Shown here: one piece after another, positions 20,402 to 62,677 of the stretch
How the letters are laid out: each line of letters opens with the position of its first letter
Numbering within the stretch: the stretch's first letter is position 1
Sequence record: OR228459.1
DNA length: 64,000 bases
Strand: one strand, 5' to 3'
Made by a program: the position numbers and the translations under genes
The notes under the pieces: model-generated
What the model saw: only the letters and a program-made list of their open reading frames with translations
Told to the model about the DNA's origin: nothing
Database searches by the model: none

Positions 20402-20430
20402 GGGACAAACCGGGATATTGGTGATATAAT
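20402..20430 (+). promoter_or_regulatory. GGGACA-class promoter of the nrdD operon
   Basis: GGGACA-17 bp-TATAAT. Confidence 0.75.
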
Positions 20431-20477
20431 AATTGTGTACTATCTAAATAAATCACCACAATGACACGGAGAGTCGA

Positions 20478-31332: not shown

Positions 31333-31708
31333 TGTTTATAGATTAATAAGGACAATTAAAAATTGCGAAAAGATTAAAGACGAAGATACGTTCTATAGTG
31401 TAGATGATAATCGTGTACTACTATTTGAGTATAGTCATACTGAAAATAGTTCTTTAAATTTCGTTTGTCCTAAAGACGAAAACGGTGACTTCATATTAGT
31501 TGAAATAACAGAAGAAGGAACTGAATTTACTAAAATTTCCAATAATGGAAGCAAATATGATATAATCGATTTAAGTACTGAAGATAATTTCTTCCAAGAA
31601 AGTACAGTATTAGATTTAGGATTTACTTATGATGAATACTGTTCTATCAGGATGGATTTTTTAAAGTACTATAATGGATTTCTAGATGGGATGACAATTT
31701 TTATATGA
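31319..31708 (+). CDS. hypothetical protein, FQxS-motif family
   Basis: EDNFFQESTVLDL. Confidence 0.7.
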   Translation: MTQNDVYRLIRTIKNCEKIKDEDTFYSVDDNRVLLFEYSHTENSSLNFVCPKDENGDFILVEITEEGTEFTKISNNGSKYDIIDLSTEDNFFQESTVLDLGFTYDEYCSIRMDFLKYYNGFLDGMTIFI

Positions 31709-32946
31709 GTGATAATTTTCTAAAAGGCCAGATCGTAAAACATTACGCTGGTTCACATGCATATGGAACTAGTACTCCAGAAAGTGATGTTGACTTTAGG
31801 GGTATTTTTATAGCTGACAAGAAGTATATTCTAACACCTTTCTTCAATGTACGCGAAGTGAATGATCCAAATGAAGAAGATACTAAATTCTTTGAACTTA
31901 ATCACTTCATGGAATTATGCGTAGATGCCAACCCAAACATCCTAGAAACTCTATGGGTAGATGATAAAGATATCGTAATGCGTACTGAAATGTACGATCA
32001 TCTTCGTTCTTATCGTGATGAATTTTTGAGTACTAAAATTGCTTACACTTATACTGGTTATGCTCACAACCAAGCAACACGTATGAAAAACCATCATGGT
32101 TGGATGGCTAAAGAACAAACAGGTGAACGCAGATTACGTGATATATTTGATAAGTATCCTTGCCAACAAGTAATTGATTGGATGTATAACTATTTCCCTG
32201 AATATGTAGTTGATCGGATCGACACGTCCAAAGGTAAAGGTGTATACATTAAAGGACTTATTGATTTTGATAAATTCCTTCGTGATATCTCACTCCAGCT
32301 TATTAGTACTGTACCATTAGCACAGCACCACTTCGTGCGTTTAGTTCATAACTATTTGCCAGAAAAAGTACTAGATCGCGATTTCAATTTAGCAAATTTC
32401 AATTACGATCATGAATTGATTCATTATGGTGATAACATTTTTGCTGTTGTTCCTAAGAAAAATAGTAAACTATTGGTGGGTTTGGGTGATTTACTATGGG
32501 ATAGCAAGAAAGAAAGAACCACAGAAGAATTAAAAGTAGTTCCTTCTATAATTGTTAAATTCAACAAGAAAGAGTATGAAGAACTAAATGAAAACCGTAA
32601 GCATTACCATGAGTGGAAGAAGAACCGTAACAGTAAAAGATCTGAATTGGAATCCATCAATGGTTATGATACAAAACATGCCATGCACGTTGTACGGTTG
32701 CTCCGCACAGCAGAAGAAGCATTAACAACAGGTCAAGTACAAGTACGTAGACCAGATGCAGAAGAACTACTTGCCATCAGAAATGGTGCTTGGAGTTATG
32801 AAGAAATGATGCAGTACTTTAGTGATAAGGAGAAGTATATCCGTGAAGTACTTGTAAAATCATCTCCATTACGCAAAAAAGCTGATATTAAAGTTGCAGC
32901 TAAAGTAATGGAAGAACTATATGAAATGTACTGGTATAAAAAGTGA
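31705..32946 (+). CDS. RlaP-like Pol-beta superfamily nucleotidyltransferase
   Basis: AGSHAYGTSTPESDVDFRGIF, ANPNILETL, GYAHNQ, YDTKHAMHVVRLL, ELLAIRNG. Confidence 0.8.
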   Translation: MSDNFLKGQIVKHYAGSHAYGTSTPESDVDFRGIFIADKKYILTPFFNVREVNDPNEEDTKFFELNHFMELCVDANPNILETLWVDDKDIVMRTEMYDHLRSYRDEFLSTKIAYTYTGYAHNQATRMKNHHGWMAKEQTGERRLRDIFDKYPCQQVIDWMYNYFPEYVVDRIDTSKGKGVYIKGLIDFDKFLRDISLQLISTVPLAQHHFVRLVHNYLPEKVLDRDFNLANFNYDHELIHYGDNIFAVVPKKNSKLLVGLGDLLWDSKKERTTEELKVVPSIIVKFNKKEYEELNENRKHYHEWKKNRNSKRSELESINGYDTKHAMHVVRLLRTAEEALTTGQVQVRRPDAEELLAIRNGAWSYEEMMQYFSDKEKYIREVLVKSSPLRKKADIKVAAKVMEELYEMYWYKK

Positions 32947-35584: not shown

Positions 35585-36223
35585 ATGCTAGGTTATACCG
35601 TTAAGAAAGTACTACCACTTGAAGTTCTGGAATCATTAGAAACTCATGGTTCTATGAAATCTGCAACTGTTGATGGGATTACATTTAATTATTTCCCAGA
35701 AAAGATTGCAACATTTCTTAAGAATAATAAATGTATTTGCTGTGGAATACAAGCACATGAAGTACGTTTAGAAGAAGGTAAAGGTACTCATGCCATCTAT
35801 GGTAATGTTCACCTTAACGTGTATGCTAAACATATCACGACTTGGGGAGAGTATTGGGATCTAATGACAATAGATCATGCCATTCTCAAATCAAGAAACG
35901 GCCCTGATATTCAAGAAAACTTTAATACTATGTGTCGGAAGTGTAATAAACTTCGCGGTTCGCGTTATCCCAATCTTCAAGACTTTCTATCTCGCTATGC
36001 AGAGCACGGAGAGTCTTTGATTACAAGTCGTGCTACATCTCTTCATCATTACCGTTTACGTAAACGTGAACAGGGTACAGAAGAATATAAAGCTATCGTG
36101 AAGCATCGTAATGAGATGCGTGAAGCAAAGGTCGCTGAGTATCTTAACGGTCTTTGTGCATCTCATGTAGGAGCTTACAATCGCCACAACAAAGCCTTGA
36201 AAAAAGCATTGACAGTAGGTTGA
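35585..36223 (+). CDS. HNH endonuclease
   Basis: CICCG...MTIDHAILKSRNG...NFNTMCRKCN..RG. Confidence 0.75.
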   Translation: MLGYTVKKVLPLEVLESLETHGSMKSATVDGITFNYFPEKIATFLKNNKCICCGIQAHEVRLEEGKGTHAIYGNVHLNVYAKHITTWGEYWDLMTIDHAILKSRNGPDIQENFNTMCRKCNKLRGSRYPNLQDFLSRYAEHGESLITSRATSLHHYRLRKREQGTEEYKAIVKHRNEMREAKVAEYLNGLCASHVGAYNRHNKALKKALTVG

Positions 36224-36279: not shown

Positions 36280-36633
36280 ATGAAGACAAAACGTTTCCCA
36301 CAAGATATAATGAAACAGATGGCATACGGTTGCAGTACTGTAACAATGTTTGGTGAATATAACGACAAGATGGGTTGCTTTGATGATGATGTAGAATTAG
36401 AAGTATTACATAATGAGGAATGCAATACTACTCGTTGGAATAGCGTTCATGACCTTGTGTTTGTTGACAAACAGACAGGAGAAGCGTATCATACACAGTA
36501 TGAAAAAGGTCTTACCGAATCACAGATGCTAGAACCATTTGACTACGATAAAGATGGTGTTGATTGCGATATTGTTGATGTTTGGGAAGAAGAAGTTACA
36601 TACAAAGTTATTAGGTGGAAAGATTCTAAATGA
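36280..36633 (+). CDS. hypothetical protein
   Basis: GGAG SD before MKTKRF. Confidence 0.75.
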   Translation: MKTKRFPQDIMKQMAYGCSTVTMFGEYNDKMGCFDDDVELEVLHNEECNTTRWNSVHDLVFVDKQTGEAYHTQYEKGLTESQMLEPFDYDKDGVDCDIVDVWEEEVTYKVIRWKDSK

Positions 36634-37019
36634 TTAAAGATATTGATTTTTCAGGACTTGAAATCGTTAGTGCAGTCAAGAACATTACTGACATGTATGA
36701 TGAAAAAGGGGTGATTTGTACTATTACTTTTTTAAAAGAGGAAGATAGTATTTCGCATCTAACGGGAATTGAAGAATTAGTAGCTAAATTAGATTTAGAA
36801 GAAAATAAGAAGTATATTAAACTTTCTTATTCTTATACTATGGTTGAAAAAGAGATCGATACCGACCGCCCGGTGAAGGTGATTTTTACAGGAATAAATA
36901 AACCGTACAAAAAAATCTCCCGGTGCACTGAGGACAGTACTGAACTGATGCAGGACATTAAATTCATTGATGAGGTCTTTGAACGTTCACCTAATGAACT
37001 CAAACGCACATATCTATAA
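36630..37019 (+). CDS. hypothetical protein
   Basis: Coupled ORF. Confidence 0.7.
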   Translation: MIKDIDFSGLEIVSAVKNITDMYDEKGVICTITFLKEEDSISHLTGIEELVAKLDLEENKKYIKLSYSYTMVEKEIDTDRPVKVIFTGINKPYKKISRCTEDSTELMQDIKFIDEVFERSPNELKRTYL

Positions 37020-37022
37020 TCT

Positions 37023-37052
37023 TGGGACAAACAGGTTTTTTTGTGATATAAT
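37023..37052 (+). promoter_or_regulatory. GGGACA-class promoter of the candidate ncRNA
   Basis: TGGGACAAAC..TTGTGATATAAT, 17-bp spacer. Confidence 0.75.
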
Positions 37053-37057
37053 ATATG

Positions 37058-37546
37058 ATGAGGGATTACCCTCAGTCATACCAATCCTGAATGGCATGTG
37101 AAAGCATGAAAAATAAAAACCTGATCCTATCGAAAAGTAGATGGCAGATGAGTAGTTCATTCAGTACGATGTGCAAAAGAAACCCGTCAGAAATAAAGCG
37201 TAAGTGTAGTCGATTCCAACGAGACGTAAATCACACGCATCACGGCAATGCGGCACAATAAAGGCGTTAAGAAAACATAATCGCCCTAGATAGACATATG
37301 AGGCATACTCACCTAGTTGAAAGGGAGTCTCTTTACGGAGAGACAGCAGTATTTGTTGCTGAATTAGCAAGTACTGTAAGCGTGTGAGGAACACGACCGT
37401 TGTATGCAGACTGTAGTAGCTGGAAACAGGACAACCCGCCAGCGATTACTTTTATTTCAAATGGATTGATCCGTCTGAAATTTGAGTGGAATCTACAAAT
37501 TCAGATTGGTATGACTACCAGTGTCAGGTTTATCCTGATTTTTTTT
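37058..37546 (+). ncRNA. candidate large structured non-coding RNA, family unassigned
   Basis: No credible ORF; perfect 13-bp end-closing helix 37074-86/37504-16; nested helices 37205-18/37487-97 and 37278-84/37442-48; GAAA and UACG tetraloop hairpins; flanked by promoter and terminator. Confidence 0.7.
37523..37546 (+). terminator. intrinsic terminator closing the candidate ncRNA
   Basis: TCAGG-TTTAT-CCTGA plus T8. Confidence 0.7.
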
Positions 37547-37712
37547 CGGCCCTCCCTTGTGGGGGGATGGAATTGGATCACAAACCGTGTCAATAATAAA
37601 AAGTACAAACAATATAATTTGAATTATTATTTCTATAAGCGAAGTATGAGCGTAAGAGAAATAATAATTCTTAGACAATCGAAGATTGGCTAATCAAAAA
37701 CAAGGATATGAC

Positions 37713-38189
37713 ATGAATTCACATGAATTAGCTAAAAAGCTATTAGAGTTGCCAGAACACGAAGTGTTTATTGAAGTACAAACACCATCATCTAATGGTG
37801 TTGGTTTTGAATACAAAACAATAAAAATTTCTGAAAAGAATCAAATCACTCCTTCTGGTATTTTCCTTAAGCCTGATGTTTTCTTTAACCATACTAATGT
37901 AAAATCTCCTAACAGTGAACCAGTTATTGGTTCATATGCATTATACTTCAAAGATAAAACGGTAGTGATTAATCGTTATGATGAAAGTCGAATTAGTACT
38001 GCAACAGTTAAATTGTTGAGTACTGGAGAAAGTCGTGTTCACGAATATGGTACTTATAATATGACTATTCATGACAATTTCCAACATTTCAATCGTGGAT
38101 TTGAAACTGATATTGTATTAGTAACTAATAAAGAAACATTTGGGGAAAAGAACAAAAGCTATATCCAAATGCAGAGATTAGACATTTAG
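37713..38189 (+). CDS. hypothetical protein
   Basis: AAGGA SD; N-terminal module shared with 39965..40501. Confidence 0.7.
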   Translation: MNSHELAKKLLELPEHEVFIEVQTPSSNGVGFEYKTIKISEKNQITPSGIFLKPDVFFNHTNVKSPNSEPVIGSYALYFKDKTVVINRYDESRISTATVKLLSTGESRVHEYGTYNMTIHDNFQHFNRGFETDIVLVTNKETFGEKNKSYIQMQRLDI

Positions 38190-45237: not shown

Positions 45238-45829
45238 GAAAAAACATAAAATGGGTGTATTACACGTTGAACCACATATTCCAGAACCATATCGTACTGG
45301 AAATACTATTGTGGCGAATTGTTACGAAAAACGCGAAGAGATTTCTAAAGGTCTAATAGCAATTTGCACTTGTGTAGACTACAAGACCAAGAAAGGACAA
45401 TTGGTATCTGGATATGTACTTTCCATTAAGTACGAACAAACTGCTGAACGTCTTCCAAATACATCTGACCTACTAAACATGACACTGAAAGAAGTTGAGT
45501 ACTGGTGCTCTCCTGAAATCGAAAAAGAAGAACCAGCATTCGTTAAGAACATGGCACGTCCAGTTTATCAGCGTAAGTTTAAAGAAGCACACAAGATTCA
45601 CCGCACAAAATTAAAGTTGACACTCAACCCGATTTTGCGTAAAATACAATTCTGGACAAATGAACCATACGTTATCGCATCTAAGTTCAATAACGGTGAA
45701 TTTGTCTCATATACTATTCAGCGTGTAAAATACAGTAAGTACCCAGAACTATCCCGACGGGAAGTTTATAACTTTGAAGTGAAAAATCCTATACTTAAAA
45801 CTATTAAACATGTTTTTGGAGTGAAATAA
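45224..45829 (+). CDS. hypothetical protein
   Basis: GGAG SD before a TTG start (MTDSKK). Confidence 0.7.
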   Translation: MTDSKKKHKMGVLHVEPHIPEPYRTGNTIVANCYEKREEISKGLIAICTCVDYKTKKGQLVSGYVLSIKYEQTAERLPNTSDLLNMTLKEVEYWCSPEIEKEEPAFVKNMARPVYQRKFKEAHKIHRTKLKLTLNPILRKIQFWTNEPYVIASKFNNGEFVSYTIQRVKYSKYPELSRREVYNFEVKNPILKTIKHVFGVK

Positions 45830-47037
45830 TGGCAGAACTAATTAAAGAAGGTCGTAAACTAGTAACCATTCGTAAAATTAATGCTATCGACCCAATTGAG
45901 GGTGCTGATATGATTGTGAAAGCTACAGTTGATGGGTGGGATGTTGTTGTTAAAAAAGGTGAGTTCAATGTTGGTGATTTCTGTGTATTTCTAGAAATTG
46001 ATTCTTTTGTTCCTGTTGAAACTCCACAATTTGCATTCCTAACTGGTAGTGCGGATAAAATTGATGAAACTGGAGTACGTCGCTTCCGTCTACGCACCCG
46101 CAAACTTCGCGGAGTTGTAAGTCAAGGTCTAGCACTACCAACTTCTCATTTCCAGAATGAACTAGGACTAATTGCGGAATCATTAGAAGTACTAGAAGAA
46201 TCTCGTGATGGTATTGAGCAATTTCTAAACGTAACTAAGTATGAACGTCCTGATGAGCGTAATGGTGGAACTGGTGCACAGAAATGTAAGAGTGCTGGAA
46301 ACTTCCCAATTACCATTCCAAAAACTGATGAAGATCGTATTCAGAACGTATTTGGTAAGTTCTCACAAACTATGAAAGGTGTTGGCTTCCGTAAGTCTCT
46401 AAAACTAGATGGTTCTAGTCAGACTATTGCATTCTTTAACAATCCTAATTTCTTTGTTGAAAAAGTAGATGAAGAAGTACATGCGTGGAATGAAGAAAAA
46501 CAAGAACTAGAAATTGTGGAAGTTAAACCATATCCTTTCCAGTGGGCTGAATCTCAAATTGTGGTATGTTCTCGTAACCTAGCACTAAAATTTGATGCTG
46601 AATCTCACTTCTGGAAAGCAGCCCTAAAAGATGATATCCCTGCTCGCCTTAAAGAGTACTGTGAACGTCATGACCGCCAGCTTGCCCTCCAAGGCGAAGT
46701 TATGGGGCCGGGTATTCAAGGCAACCGCGAAGAACTAGAAGATCATCAGTTTTATCTATTCCGTGTGTGGGATATTGATAACAAGTGTTTCCTTGACGAT
46801 GCAGAATTTCAAGAATTAGCATCACTACTAGGCTTGACAACTGTCCCACAAGGTGATATTGTATATTTCTTTGATGAGTATGAGACTATTAAGGATGCAC
46901 TAGCATCTGCGGAACATGCTTCTATCAAACACAAAATCGCTGAAGGTGATGTATATAAGAGCGTAACTAAGGTAAATGGTCAAACTATTCACTTTAAAGT
47001 TATCAACAATAAATTCCTTCTAAAATGTGAAGACTAA
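45829..47037 (+). CDS. ATP-dependent RNA ligase, DRB0094/Rnl5 family
   Basis: N-terminal RKLVTIRKI..I.PIEGAD...VVVKKGEF..GD.CVFLEIDS; motif I KLDGSS; QGEVMGPGIQGN; FKVINNKFLL. Confidence 0.88.
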   Translation: MAELIKEGRKLVTIRKINAIDPIEGADMIVKATVDGWDVVVKKGEFNVGDFCVFLEIDSFVPVETPQFAFLTGSADKIDETGVRRFRLRTRKLRGVVSQGLALPTSHFQNELGLIAESLEVLEESRDGIEQFLNVTKYERPDERNGGTGAQKCKSAGNFPITIPKTDEDRIQNVFGKFSQTMKGVGFRKSLKLDGSSQTIAFFNNPNFFVEKVDEEVHAWNEEKQELEIVEVKPYPFQWAESQIVVCSRNLALKFDAESHFWKAALKDDIPARLKEYCERHDRQLALQGEVMGPGIQGNREELEDHQFYLFRVWDIDNKCFLDDAEFQELASLLGLTTVPQGDIVYFFDEYETIKDALASAEHASIKHKIAEGDVYKSVTKVNGQTIHFKVINNKFLLKCED

Positions 47038-47240: not shown

Positions 47241-47289
47241 GCAGTTTGTTTCAAAAACTTGGGACAAACTGCTTTTTATGTGCTATAAT
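47241..47289 (+). promoter_or_regulatory. terminator hairpin overlapping a GGGACA-class promoter
   Basis: GCAGTTTGT...ACAAACTGC plus T5; GGGACA 47261-66, 17 bp, TATAAT 47284-89. Confidence 0.7.
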
Positions 47290-47351: not shown

Positions 47352-48869
47352 ATGTCCTTTAAACAAGCAGTTAATAATATGAACGTAAAAGCTGAAGATA
47401 ACGTGAGTAGCACCGCAAACGGTGCAGTATCTCTAGCGAGTTCACTAAACCCACTAGTTGATCTATTTGCAATCCTAGGTTCTGTTCGTGGTAAAGACTT
47501 TTCTACCTTTGAGAATCTTTTCGAACAAGCATATTCTATAAACCGTAAGCTAACGCTACAAATGGTTTTATGGTTACGTGATGTTCGTGGTGGTGCTGGT
47601 GAGCGTGAAACTACACGTCAAATCCTTCTCCATCTAGAAGCAAAACACCCACAAGATTTGATCGATATTATCCCTGTACTTGCAGAGTATGGTCGTTGGG
47701 ATGATCTATTAATCTTTACTATGCCTACTCTAAAAGAGATTGCATATAAAACCATTGCTGAAAATCTAAAAGCTGGTAACGGGCTTTGTGCTAAATGGAT
47801 GCCTCGCGTATATAAACTCAAAAAGAGTAAAGATGGTTCTGTAAACAAAGAATCTGTTGCAAACGTTAACCGTATCGCTAACAATCAAATTGCTCGTGAG
47901 CTAATGCAGGTGATGGGTCTTAACGAACGTCAGTATCGTAAACTACTATCTTCAACTAGTAATACAGTTGAACAAAACATGTGTGCTAAAGATTGGTCTA
48001 ACATTGAGTACTCACATGTACCTTCTGTTGCAATGAACCGTTATCGTAATGCATTTATGCGTAACGATGAAGAACGTTTCACTACGTTTGGTCAGAAAGT
48101 CGCGAGTGGGGAAGTATCGGTGAATGCAAGTGCATTATTCCCATATGATATTACGACCAAGATTCGTGGCGAACTTGATCCAGTACTAGTAGGTCAGTGG
48201 GATTCTCTACCGGACTATTTGAACGGAAGTAAAATTCTACCAATGTGTGATACCAGTGGTTCAATGGGTGTTAGTGCAGGTGGTGGTAAAATGTCATGTC
48301 TAGATGTGGCAAAATCACTAAGCCTATATACGGCTGATAAGCAAAAGGGTGCATTTAAGGATGTATTCTTGACTTTCAGTGAAGAACCAGATTTGTTTGT
48401 ACTTGAAGGTAATAACATCCATGAGAAATATCATGACCTTTGTCATTATGAAAATTATGAGTATTGGGGTGGTTCTACTGACATTGGTAAAGCATTTGAC
48501 AAAGTACTAGAAGTTGCTGTGAAGCAAAATGTACCACAAGAAGATATGCCAGAGTATCTAATCATTTATAGTGACATGGAGTTCAATGAAACTTATTGTG
48601 ATGGAAACAATGGTAACTGGAGTGTAACCGCACATGAATATGCGAAAGCTAAATTTGCTGCTGCTGGTTATGAACTACCGCATGTTATCTTCTGGAACTT
48701 GAACGGGCGTGTTGGAAACAACCCTGTTCGTTTCGATGAAACAGGAACGGCTATGGTATCCGGGTTCAGTCCTGCTGTACTAAAAGCAATTCTATCTGGT
48801 GAGCAAGTAGATCCTGTATCTATTATGCTAGCAGCCATTGATGTGCCACGTTACAAGGTCATCGCATAA
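47352..48869 (+). CDS. DUF2828 (TROVE-like helical + vWA) protein
   Basis: WLRDVRGGAGER, YGRWDDL, CAKWMPR, YRKLLS, VPSVAM, MCDTSGSM, SDMEFN, IFWNL, VSGFS. Confidence 0.85.
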   Translation: MSFKQAVNNMNVKAEDNVSSTANGAVSLASSLNPLVDLFAILGSVRGKDFSTFENLFEQAYSINRKLTLQMVLWLRDVRGGAGERETTRQILLHLEAKHPQDLIDIIPVLAEYGRWDDLLIFTMPTLKEIAYKTIAENLKAGNGLCAKWMPRVYKLKKSKDGSVNKESVANVNRIANNQIARELMQVMGLNERQYRKLLSSTSNTVEQNMCAKDWSNIEYSHVPSVAMNRYRNAFMRNDEERFTTFGQKVASGEVSVNASALFPYDITTKIRGELDPVLVGQWDSLPDYLNGSKILPMCDTSGSMGVSAGGGKMSCLDVAKSLSLYTADKQKGAFKDVFLTFSEEPDLFVLEGNNIHEKYHDLCHYENYEYWGGSTDIGKAFDKVLEVAVKQNVPQEDMPEYLIIYSDMEFNETYCDGNNGNWSVTAHEYAKAKFAAAGYELPHVIFWNLNGRVGNNPVRFDETGTAMVSGFSPAVLKAILSGEQVDPVSIMLAAIDVPRYKVIA

Positions 48870-61903: not shown

Positions 61904-62677
61904 ATGGCAAATATGCTAAACAAATATGGTGTTCCTCTACCAAGTGGTAGAAATAAAACCATGCTTCAGCCAAAATCAAAATATAAATTCAGGGTGGTTG
62001 TATATAACTTTGGTACTGATATCAATGATCGTGATCACATAGCTCTAGATGTGGATCAAGTAGATAGACCATCGGTGACATTCAACACACAAAAAGTAGA
62101 TATGTTCACTACTAATAGCTCATATGTTACTAAACATAACTGGAATCCTATTGTACTAACAATTAGAGATTCGGTAGGTAATGAATCCGCAAAAGCACTA
62201 TCAAGACAGCTTCAAAAACAATTAGATTTTCCACGTAGAATTACTTCTCGTTCTGAACAAAACTATTCGGGTTATAAATTTGGTTTAATCATTCAAATGC
62301 TTAATGGTAGAAATTCTGAAGATACATTAACTAATTTAGGAAGAGATACAGCAGTTGATATTTCTTCCGCATTAACAAATAACGAAGGGTTGACTAATGC
62401 AATTGATCAATTCATCGGTGGTTCTTCATATAATAGTGATGGTATCATGGAGTACTTTGTTTGTGTTGGATGTATTATTCAAGACATAAACTACGATTCT
62501 CTTGATTATAGTTCTTCATCTCCAGTAACTATGAAAATTACAATTAAACCTGATAATGTAGTACAGTATGATACTATTGCTGAAATGTACAATAGTCGTA
62601 TCAATTCTCTACTTCCTGATGAAGTTAACCAAGGGCTTGATATTATTGATAAAATTTTTGGACAAGCAGGACTATAA
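61904..62677 (+). CDS. tail tube-like protein, paralog 2
   Basis: Same start MANML.KYGVPL; QPKSKYKFRV, WNPIVLTIRDSVGN, CIIQDINYDSLDYSSS. Confidence 0.75.
   Translation: MANMLNKYGVPLPSGRNKTMLQPKSKYKFRVVVYNFGTDINDRDHIALDVDQVDRPSVTFNTQKVDMFTTNSSYVTKHNWNPIVLTIRDSVGNESAKALSRQLQKQLDFPRRITSRSEQNYSGYKFGLIIQMLNGRNSEDTLTNLGRDTAVDISSALTNNEGLTNAIDQFIGGSSYNSDGIMEYFVCVGCIIQDINYDSLDYSSSSPVTMKITIKPDNVVQYDTIAEMYNSRINSLLPDEVNQGLDIIDKIFGQAGL

Follow-up and report, generated by a model that had tools for sequence, protein, structure and literature searches.

Large, intricately folded RNAs are rare in bacteria and phages, and each of the classes OLE, GOLLD, ROOL and raiA opened structural and functional work. 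ROOL and GOLLD often adjoin tRNA genes; they span several hundred nucleotides (nt), contain many covarying helices and occur in phage genomes, and in all these respects, apart from the tRNA neighbours, they resemble the RNA described here. This RNA is encoded in a stretch of 64,000 nt from sequence record OR228459.1 (called the window in what follows and numbered from its first letter), within a gap for which an earlier note, made from the letters of the stretch, had proposed an ornate non-coding RNA of ~490 nt (37058–37546) with its own promoter and terminator. The comparative data presented below leave very little doubt that the gap encodes a genuine structured RNA, which belongs to a new, apparently undescribed family. 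ROOL and GOLLD, the only phage RNAs comparable to it, are described in a cryo-EM preprint as forming RNA-only assemblies (bioRxiv 10.1101/2024.12.08.627333).

Several features set the RNA apart from ROOL and GOLLD. Neither of the two Rfam covariance models matches it, even at E ≤ 10; every genome has two to five diverged paralogues, each of them behind a promoter of its own; the carriers are Enterobacterales and Xanthomonas phages; and no tRNA gene lies near the loci, as ARAGORN found none in the 64-kb window nor in 40 homologous loci of 3–15 kb. Of the two options left by the earlier note, a member of the ROOL/GOLLD class or a new class, the first does not apply and the second is probable. 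To our knowledge, old paralogues present two to five times per genome, at fixed and widely spaced sites and behind phage-specific promoters, have not been described for OLE, GOLLD, ROOL or raiA.

A wider comparison with known RNAs led to the same indication. The cmscan search of the whole window against Rfam 15 returned no match at the gathering threshold, the 851-nt region searched at E ≤ 10 gave only unrelated noise, and the paralogous loci searched at E ≤ 1 gave nothing better than noise; weak matches to the S15 leader, nqrA-II, whalefall-1 and a S. pyogenes sRNA (3' hairpin) were rejected, as they fell far below the gathering scores. In agreement with the earlier note, which could not match the RNA to tmRNA, RNase P or a group I intron, ARAGORN found no tmRNA, Rfam gave no match for tmRNA or RNase P, and the Intron_gpI model did not match even at E ≤ 10. 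Literature searches returned no description of this RNA. An RNA that likewise lacks open reading frames (ORFs) is known from the distantly related jumbo phage PA5oct, namely ncRNA002, a 451-nt 'putative lncRNA' detected by RNA-seq and accounting for 4.65–5.04% of the phage reads in early and mid infection (PMC7318152). It was discarded as a homologue, having no nhmmer match and none of the core motifs.

The folding energy of the region was compared with that of shuffled sequences. The plus strand reaches a minimum free energy (MFE) of −144.5 kcal/mol (z = −5.24) and none of 100 shuffles folds as well, as expected from the earlier note; the minus strand folds nearly as well (z = −4.73), so that energy alone cannot pick the strand. 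Comparative evidence was obtained from two sets of sequences. Specifically, 19 distinct homologues of copy A, the paralogue type found at the window locus, share 57–99% identity and gave an RNAalifold consensus of 104 pairs, 37 of which carry double compensatory changes, while the set of all paralogues comprised 61 distinct full-length copies, for which a second, independent alignment was made by L-INS-i. In addition, helices were recovered without any energy model, by mutual information with average product correction and by a scan for conserved complementary runs.

As a control for kinship among the copies, the changes in each column were counted by Fitch parsimony on a FastTree tree, and 300 trials of variability-matched random column pairs served as the null. 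The 62 core pairs showed 259 same-branch paired changes, compared to 63 ± 7 in the null, whose maximum was 91; conservation and covariation in related phages, on which the earlier proposal depended, are both borne out by these counts. Single core pairs reach 11–17 independent changes at 97–100% pairing. For instance, the pair 37383/37393 shows 11 changes per column and 11 pair-state changes and is paired in 100% of the cells, the pair 37420/37442 shows 9 and 10 column changes and 10 pair-state changes, and the pair 37129/37142 shows 16 and 15 column changes and 17 pair-state changes, with 98% of the cells paired. Among the 4233 paired cells, 3782 are Watson–Crick, 333 are G·U and only 29 are A·C. 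This large excess of G·U over A·C indicates that selection acts on the plus-strand transcript, and, together with the compensatory changes, it means that constraint on a coding sequence or on double-stranded DNA cannot be the cause. Finally, the non-coding gap and the promoter in front of it are conserved across genera. All together, the covariation upholds the large, ornate non-coding RNA with its own promoter that had been proposed, and suggests four pseudoknot-type pairings (P3, which wraps P1; PKa; the crossing of P11 and P13; and PKb, between the P9 loop and 37498–504), with the proviso that covariation does not separate intramolecular from intermolecular pairing, PKb being an example.

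The conserved fold extends on the plus strand from ~37059 to at least 37593 and comprises some fifteen helices, connected by joining regions that are almost invariant (GAUGAG, ACCCGU, CACGGCAAUGCGGC, GAUAGA, AAGGGA, GACCGUUG, GAAAC-CAACCCGC and GGGGGGAUG). The most conserved part is an H-type pseudoknot at 37399–37443, in which P11 (37399–403/37431–35) crosses P13 (37419–23/37439–43), every position of both helices being paired in 61 of the 61 copies. This core contains the near-invariant GACCGUUG and GAAAC-CAACCCGC blocks, and a search of the viral collection with their motifs recovered all the paralogues. Selection on the core is strong, both purifying and compensatory. Between P11 and P13 lies the 5' strand of P12 (37412–16/37493–97), a helix in which 97–100% of the cells are paired and up to 13 pair-state changes were counted. 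P14 (37446–48/37487–89) encloses a variable arm and is solid only in the L-INS-i alignment, its first pair alone being recovered in the 61-copy alignment. Within this arm, the GAUCCGUC element (37469–76) is found in copy A and in the 260-kb type, while in the B, 35-kb and 341-kb types the same element lies between P8 and P9. Peripheral elements that move between arms with retention of the core are also seen in large ribozymes, and we read the relocation of this element around a maintained core as selection on three-dimensional shape.

The 5' domain (37087–37167) is supported by RNAalifold compensatory counts, mutual information, the stem scan and Fitch counts. It is formed by P1 (37087–94/37157–64), which is stacked on the P1a hairpin (37095–99/37104–08), by the P2 hairpin (37121–23/45–47, 37126–27/43–44 and 37129–31/40–42) and by P3 (37152–54/37165–67), which encloses the 3' strand of P1 in a pseudoknot-type arrangement; the GAUGAG joiner of this domain is invariant. 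The P4–P6 domain (37170–37297) follows, with support from RNAalifold, mutual information, the stem scan and tree counts. Here, P4 (37170–74/37253–57) and P5 (37184–87/37242–45) are accompanied by a variable insertion hairpin (37191–37239) present in a minority of copies only, by PKa (37248–50/37295–97) and by the P6 hairpin (37263–67/37281–85), which shows 8–15 pair-state changes per pair at 92–100% pairing. At position 37250/37295 of PKa, 47 copies have a G-C pair, 12 have A-U and one has C-G, and the CACGGCAAUGCGGC and GAUAGA stretches of the domain are invariant.

The central domain (37299–37395) consists of the L7 hairpin (37299–37311), the invariant AAGGGA (37321–26), the hairpins P8 (37327–32/37339–44) and P9 (37347–76), both covarying within copy A, and the P10 hairpin (37381–84/37392–95), in which the fully paired position 37383/37393 mentioned above is located. 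The apical loop of P9 (37359–65) takes part in PKb, a 7-bp pairing with 37498–504 that shows up to four pair types per position at 95–100% pairing. A further RNAalifold helix, P7 (GCAUAC 37303–08/GUAUGC 37402–07), was set aside, as it holds in copy A only; elsewhere, the loop complements the 5' strand of P12, as judged by eye.

Two elements at the periphery are less general. The 5'-terminal hairpin UGAGGG-AUUA-CCCUCA (37059–37074), already recognized in the earlier note, holds by reading of the copy-A alignments, most copy-A homologues having a hairpin of different sequence at the same place; it is left out by RNAalifold, and a stem is also found in some other paralogue clades. The 13-bp helix proposed to close the structure (37074–37086/37504–37516) is perfect in the window, belongs to the MFE fold and, by eye, is compensated in locus L016 and in Hallingskeid, but it is restricted to the subclade of the window copy and its closest relatives, since family-wide only 15–71% of the cells pair. 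As for the other pairings drawn by eye, CTGAATG/CATTCAG is P1, and this helix as well as the local hairpins CATGT-GAAA-GCATG, GTCTCT/AGAGAC, CAGTAT..TTGCT/AGCAA..TACTG and CGTGT/ACACG are supported by RNAalifold and tree counts. About half of the long-range pairings were wrong. TGTA+GATTCCA/TGGAATC+TACA gives way to P12, in which CUACA (37493–97) pairs with UGUAG (37412–16), and the bases of TAATCGC/GCGATTA are used in P6 and P13. Of the local hairpins, CTG-GAAA-CAG yields to the P13/P11 pseudoknot. The two suggested pseudoknot or switch pairings are unsupported: GTAGTC/GACTAC has one partner within the 37191–37239 insertion of a minority of copies, and AAACCTGA, suggested to pair with the terminator arm, has its CUG in helix P2.

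The boundaries proposed earlier proved too short at the 3' end, where conservation continues to 37593 and a further module reaches ~37690, so that the RNA gene measures about 540–650 bases. The hairpin with a T8 run held to be the end of the RNA was found by the consensus scan (GUCAGG-UUUAU-CCUGAU followed by U8, 37523–37546 on the plus strand, the hairpin itself at 37523–37539), but the conserved unit goes on beyond it, and several paralogues lack it. Its stem is altered yet kept in most copy-A homologues, and another hairpin with a U run is found in the B and 260-kb types; the 61-copy and copy-A alignments lack it in XaC1, in locus L025 and in the 35-kb and 341-kb clades. As it is present in part of the family only, we regard it as an optional, probably leaky terminator.

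Beyond the U8 run, the P15 hairpin (37551–37570) opposes a pyrimidine arm (37551–56) to a run of G (37561–66) and contains the near-invariant GGGGGGAUG. At the four pairs in its centre, nearly all the variation of the 5' arm is between C and U, and the facing G is invariant, with 98–100% pairing and 6–9 changes per column, which argues that the plus-strand transcript runs beyond U8. A near-invariant CAAAYC-NYGUCAR block follows, which includes the direct repeat R2 and sets the minimal 3' limit of the conserved core; both P15 and this block are present in all the paralogues, and the nhmmer profile matches reach model position ~531 in each of them.

Further downstream, an A+T-rich linker (37594–37620, 89% A+T) carries a UAUAA-like motif in 36 of 59 copies, and a 3' module was recognized by eye, with a long hairpin of 14 bp (37621–34/37657–70) that exposes an apical GCGAAGU-type (CGAAGUGA-like) motif and a short hairpin CAAUC-GAA-GAUUG (37674–90). 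Linker and module were seen by eye, with different stem sequences, in every paralogue type inspected. RNAalifold found no consensus in the alignment of the module, and fails there because the stems differ in length, so that the module rests on inspection by eye. We infer that it belongs to the same transcript as the core; it could instead be a separate late transcript. The UAUAA-like motif of the linker resembles the ATAAATA late-promoter motif reported for CBB, and in copy A of Mimasvirus and Eneladusvirus the loop of the short hairpin, GGAG, is the Shine–Dalgarno sequence of the next gene. As for the final 3' end, a strong bidirectional terminator lies ~700 nt past the promoter at locus B (L037, L049 and the UE-S1 record), and at the window locus, where the next gene opens at 37713, no terminator was found between this gene and the 3' module.

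The promoter was located by the consensus scan where the earlier note had placed it (37024–37052, plus strand): a −35-like GGGACA (37024–29) is separated by a 17-nt spacer from an extended −10 element, TGnTATAAT (37044–52), with its TG at −15/−14, and the transcription start is predicted at ~37058–37060. TATAAT or TATACT is present in all 60 copies that have enough upstream sequence, the full TGnTATAAT in 54 of these 60, and a TG(G/A)(G/A)AC(A/G) element is found 15–18 nt ahead of TATAAT in 55 of 61 copies. A 'divergent RpoD-like' promoter class of the TGAAACG type has been described in CBB and GAP32, mainly ahead of DNA-synthesis genes (PMC5259590), and by comparison of the elements the promoters of the RNA match this TGAAAC-type class. 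The promoter sequence of the RNA (37020–37060) recurs in the window at 47255–47289 and 20402–20431, as detected by BLAST, with the TGAAAC/GGGACA −35 and extended −10 of this class. In the 35-kb clade (L047, L056, L066 and others), the predicted transcript opens, directly after the promoter, with a G+C-rich, terminator-like hairpin followed by U6.

The window was identified as Salmonella phage 7t3/Munch: over the interval 36950–37700, it shows 100% identity with three phages, namely 7t3 and SE_PL of Salmonella and fENko-Kae01 of Klebsiella, base 62001 of the latter corresponding to window base 1, and 99.9% identity with Salmonella phage Munch. The genomes carrying the RNA belong to ~350-kb Rak2-like myoviruses, akin to Asteriusvirus, Mimasvirus, Eneladusvirus and Alcyoneusvirus. 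The ORF-free character of the gap was upheld: the annotation of Munch, made gene by gene with ribosome-binding sites, has no coding sequence within 37020–37712, and ten other phages (EJP2, Hallingskeid, fHe-Yen9-03, pEa_SNUABM_49, BF, GAP32, XbC2, CBB, Kaldavass and XaC1) have a syntenic gap of 580–780 nt, free of coding sequences or sparsely annotated, 3' of the spanin genes and 5' of a Dps/ferritin-like gene. The higher G+C content noticed earlier was likewise found (42.8% for 37059–37593 vs 34.9% window-wide). A coding signal was sought in the gap and not found, the longest stop-free run having a median of 81 amino acids (aa), compared to 67.5 aa in shuffled sequence (95th percentile 101). 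In the fENko-Kae01 record, the hypothetical proteins ENKO_186 and ENKO_187 are annotated within the RNA gene, at 37091–37261 and 37400–37693, and small hypothetical ORFs are also annotated in the gap of the Hallingskeid, Kaldavass and Yersinia phage records. The ORFs that some records have there measure 30–60 codons and lack conservation. Such ORFs are almost certainly spurious calls. In the UE-S1 record, part of copy B is labelled as an unexplained repeat_region.

The window contains a single copy of the RNA. Two to five copies were found in each Rak2-like genome examined, on the same strand within each genome and with a spacing between neighbouring copies that is mostly 55–85 kb. In the phage of the window, they lie at 38.9, 99.06 (the window copy), 180.96 and 264.7 kb (fENko-Kae01 coordinates). 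Five copies are found in GAP32 (35.1, 98.7, 177.5, 261.5 and 340.7 kb) and in BF (~30.5, 93.0, 174.5, 258.8 and 335.3 kb); in CBB, four were detected by motif and a fifth at 258.4 kb by BLAST, and fHe-Yen9-04, 121Q and RaK2 have four, three and two copies, respectively. In 121Q, the copy-A profile gave a full-length match (E = 4.5e-54) in the interval between the endonuclease VII and baseplate-hub genes, on the strand opposite both, and the copy B paralogue (L037:2506–2988) likewise lies between endonuclease VII and baseplate genes that are both on the opposite strand. The motif of the P11–P13 core retrieved 57 loci from the viral collection. About one chance match to the 21-base search pattern is expected, and the pattern matches L028 and L030/L034 (the latter from a Nitrosomonas metagenome-assembled genome) were rejected, with ~40% identity and, for L030, a position in apparent coding sequence. 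In the tree the copies form about five paralogue clades, which match syntenic loci across genera, and the duplication is therefore old.

A peculiar behaviour is shown by three direct repeats, R0 (37181–90), which provides the 5' strand of P5, R1 (UACCAGUGUCAG, 37516–37527) and R2 (AACCGUGUCAA, 37583–37593), all on the plus strand. They share YGU, complementary to the invariant ACG of CACGG (37241–45). R1 and R2 evolve together, as 14 changes at their six variable column pairs fall on shared branches. The pairing of R0 with ACGG is compensated in two lineages, and in the RaK2 lineage C37243 is changed to A along with a G to U change in both R1 and R2, R0 being left mismatched. The search for a common partner of R1 and R2 returned only short or promiscuous candidates (the ACG of CACGG, the G run and CUGAU). 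A three-way competition between strands, a protein site or RNA–DNA pairing at R2 are possible explanations of the three repeats.

The genes surrounding the window RNA are a DUF7325 protein gene upstream (36630–37019; full-length match, E = 1.7e-52) and, downstream on the plus strand, a gene for a 158-aa protein without Pfam match (37713–38189), at which the gap ends and which does not belong to the RNA. At the paralogue loci the flanking genes differ, coding for unknown proteins, ADP-ribosylglycohydrolase and DNA methylases, and the comparison of downstream genes, including a Pfam scan, revealed no protein gene shared by the loci. These unrelated neighbours argue against a dedicated cis target. 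At four of the five paralogue loci, the RNA stands promoter-first at the head of a same-strand gene array, while at locus B both flanking genes are on the opposite strand and the RNA has a terminator of its own, which supports an independent gene.

Possible protein partners had been suggested among RNA-related genes of the same phage. The RNA ligase was confirmed, as an Rnl-type enzyme with an OB-fold domain (45829–47037); the supposed CCA enzyme is an RlaP-family Pol-beta nucleotidyltransferase (31705–32946) and not a classical CCA enzyme, and the supposed TROVE-like protein gives matches to DUF2828 and DUF7788 (47352–48869). This RNA-repair set lies 4–10 kb from the window RNA, and none of its genes was found among the annotated neighbours of the other RNA copies inspected. 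Y RNAs are ~100–200 nt long, with a tRNA-like module and a Ro-binding stem, and their gene lies beside the Ro gene. The set makes the phage comparable to Y RNA/Ro60 systems, but the RNA, with its ~550 nt, has no tRNA-like match, its paralogues lie in unrelated neighbourhoods, and a Y RNA was rejected in view of the missing Rfam match, the size and the distance of 10 kb from the DUF2828/DUF7788 gene. Some jumbo phages are reported to encode ROT/TROVE proteins whose partner is a tRNA-like RNA (PMC7824862); a partnership of the present RNA with the RNA-repair proteins is pure speculation.

With regard to function, we tentatively favour, at somewhat less than even chances, a scaffold or assembly whose action depends on the fold of the RNA, in preference to a leader working in cis or an origin RNA. 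The host RNA polymerase, perhaps modified by the phage as at T4 middle promoters, would start near 37059; part of the transcripts would end at the hairpin–U8, giving ~490 nt, and the rest, of ~630 nt or more, would include P15, R2 and the 3' module and, at the window locus, maybe extend into the next genes. The RNA would then work by its three-dimensional fold, most likely in a particle together with a phage or host protein or, as in ROOL and GOLLD, by self-assembly, and the phage would produce several diverged forms of it. This role agrees with the ribozyme-like core, with the independence of locus B and with the absence of a neighbour common to the loci. After it we rank, in decreasing order, an antitermination leader, an origin RNA, a selfish ribozyme and no RNA at all, and the remaining probability goes to functions outside these readings.

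A number of points weigh against the fold-acting role. We found no transcript data for these phages. The promoter-first position ahead of same-strand arrays at four of five paralogue loci would equally fit a cis leader, and so would the window locus, where no terminator precedes the next genes. In addition, a plain trans-acting RNA does not account for the 55–85 kb spacing on one strand, and the concerted change of R1 and R2 is left without explanation.

The strongest of the alternatives, which we nevertheless consider unlikely, is a cis-acting antitermination leader, comparable to HK022 put RNA or EAR, in which the nascent RNA would let its own polymerase read through the hairpin–U8 and later terminators over tens of kilobases, one module heading each long same-strand gene block. 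As in those systems, the RNA lies close to its promoter; at four of the five paralogue loci it precedes a long gene array on its own strand, and a terminator-like signal comes after it that would have to be passed; beyond the internal hairpin and U run there is further conserved RNA structure. All copies lie on the majority gene strand directly after their own promoter, with the spacing already described; most genes are on that strand anyway, so that the orientation carries little information. However, the known antitermination RNAs are 70–120 nt long, so the present one, with ~550 nt and four pseudoknot-type pairings, is about five to eight times larger, and no Rfam family was matched. The internal terminator is missing in ~40% of the copies, by reading of the 61-copy alignment, and one paralogue locus, B, offers no downstream operon on the strand of the RNA, which faces opposite-strand genes and the strong bidirectional terminator there. 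In favour of the leader, CBB is predicted to hold 74 intrinsic terminators (PMC5259590).

A replication origin of the T4 oriF/oriG type appears less probable again. In this case, the transcript would form a persistent hybrid with the DNA of the A+T-rich stretch and prime the leading strand. Whether the hybrid forms would depend on the fold and on the G run, in the manner of ColE1 RNA II, a ~550-nt RNA whose fold decides primer formation. The features that recall these systems are a special promoter class, here the one enriched ahead of DNA-synthesis genes in CBB, and an A+T-rich stretch after the structured part, namely the linker at 37594–37620; as with T4 origins, there are several loci per genome, two to five spread over ~350 kb. 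Locus B lies beside the baseplate-hub gene, as presumably does T4 oriE. T4, with a genome of 169 kb, uses at least five origins, of which oriF and oriG combine a middle-mode promoter with an A+T-rich unwinding element; its minimal origins measure ~100 bp, and oriE carries direct repeats (PMC3016281). Here, R0, R1 and R2 could be DNA sites. The repeats are irregularly spaced, though, the GC skew has no inflection at the window locus, and promoter and A+T-rich linker are separated by ~535 nt of conserved structured RNA, unlike in the T4 minimal origins. Moreover, R-loop formation in T4 needs no specific RNA sequence (PMC3016281), whereas here a pseudoknotted fold is strictly conserved and the strand-specific G·U pairing points to selection on RNA, not on DNA alone.

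We consider it very unlikely that the RNA is selfish or was once mobile, for instance as a self-splicing intron now degenerate or as another ribozyme-based element, and that it spread and was then fixed. Several copies in one genome, a length of several hundred nucleotides and a ribozyme-like architecture of crossing helices and invariant joiners recall the group I introns of T4-like phages, which sometimes have an HNH gene nearby; here, the second gene upstream of the RNA codes for an HNH homing-type endonuclease (35585–36223), and in XaC1 such a gene is directly upstream (L009:756–1391). This gene is missing at most loci, including those of most relatives at this site, and probably encodes a free-standing homing endonuclease. 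Unlike an intron, each copy has its own conserved promoter directly ahead of it, has no exons and interrupts no gene, locus B being antisense to its opposite-strand neighbours; no group I, group II or other Rfam ribozyme model was matched, and the loci are orthologous across genera, which excludes recent mobility. The view that there is no RNA at all, and that a short coding region or a DNA-level repeat was mistaken for one, finds some ground in the small ORFs of the fENko-Kae01, Hallingskeid and Yersinia phage records and in the UE-S1 repeat_region, but it is extremely improbable, given that the ORFs are not conserved, that stop-free runs are as in shuffled sequence and that the covariation and the excess of G·U over A·C contradict it.

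A broader proposal, which we put forward as a possibility with less confidence than the fold-acting role, is that the RNA represents a new functional class, present in up to five copies around the 350-kb chromosome, each of which would organise its own segment, by loading the polymerase for read-through or by seeding replication, with R0, R1 and R2 competing for CACGG as a switch; alternatively, it may be a new ribozyme or a self-assembling cage in which PKb would provide paralogue-specific kissing codes.

In conclusion, the comparative support for this RNA is unusually strong, as it rests on 61 distinct sequences, in which compensatory events occurred independently dozens of times, and includes several candidate pseudoknots. 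Public records leave the regions of the RNA blank or filled with spurious small ORFs, and their annotation can be corrected at once. In addition, the RNA is carried by cultivable phages, such as 121Q and Sharanji, which grow on E. coli K-12, so that its expression, structure, partners and deletion phenotypes are directly testable. If it is true that the RNA controls transcription or replication over long distances, it would show how the 350-kb genome of a phage that depends on the host polymerase is managed.

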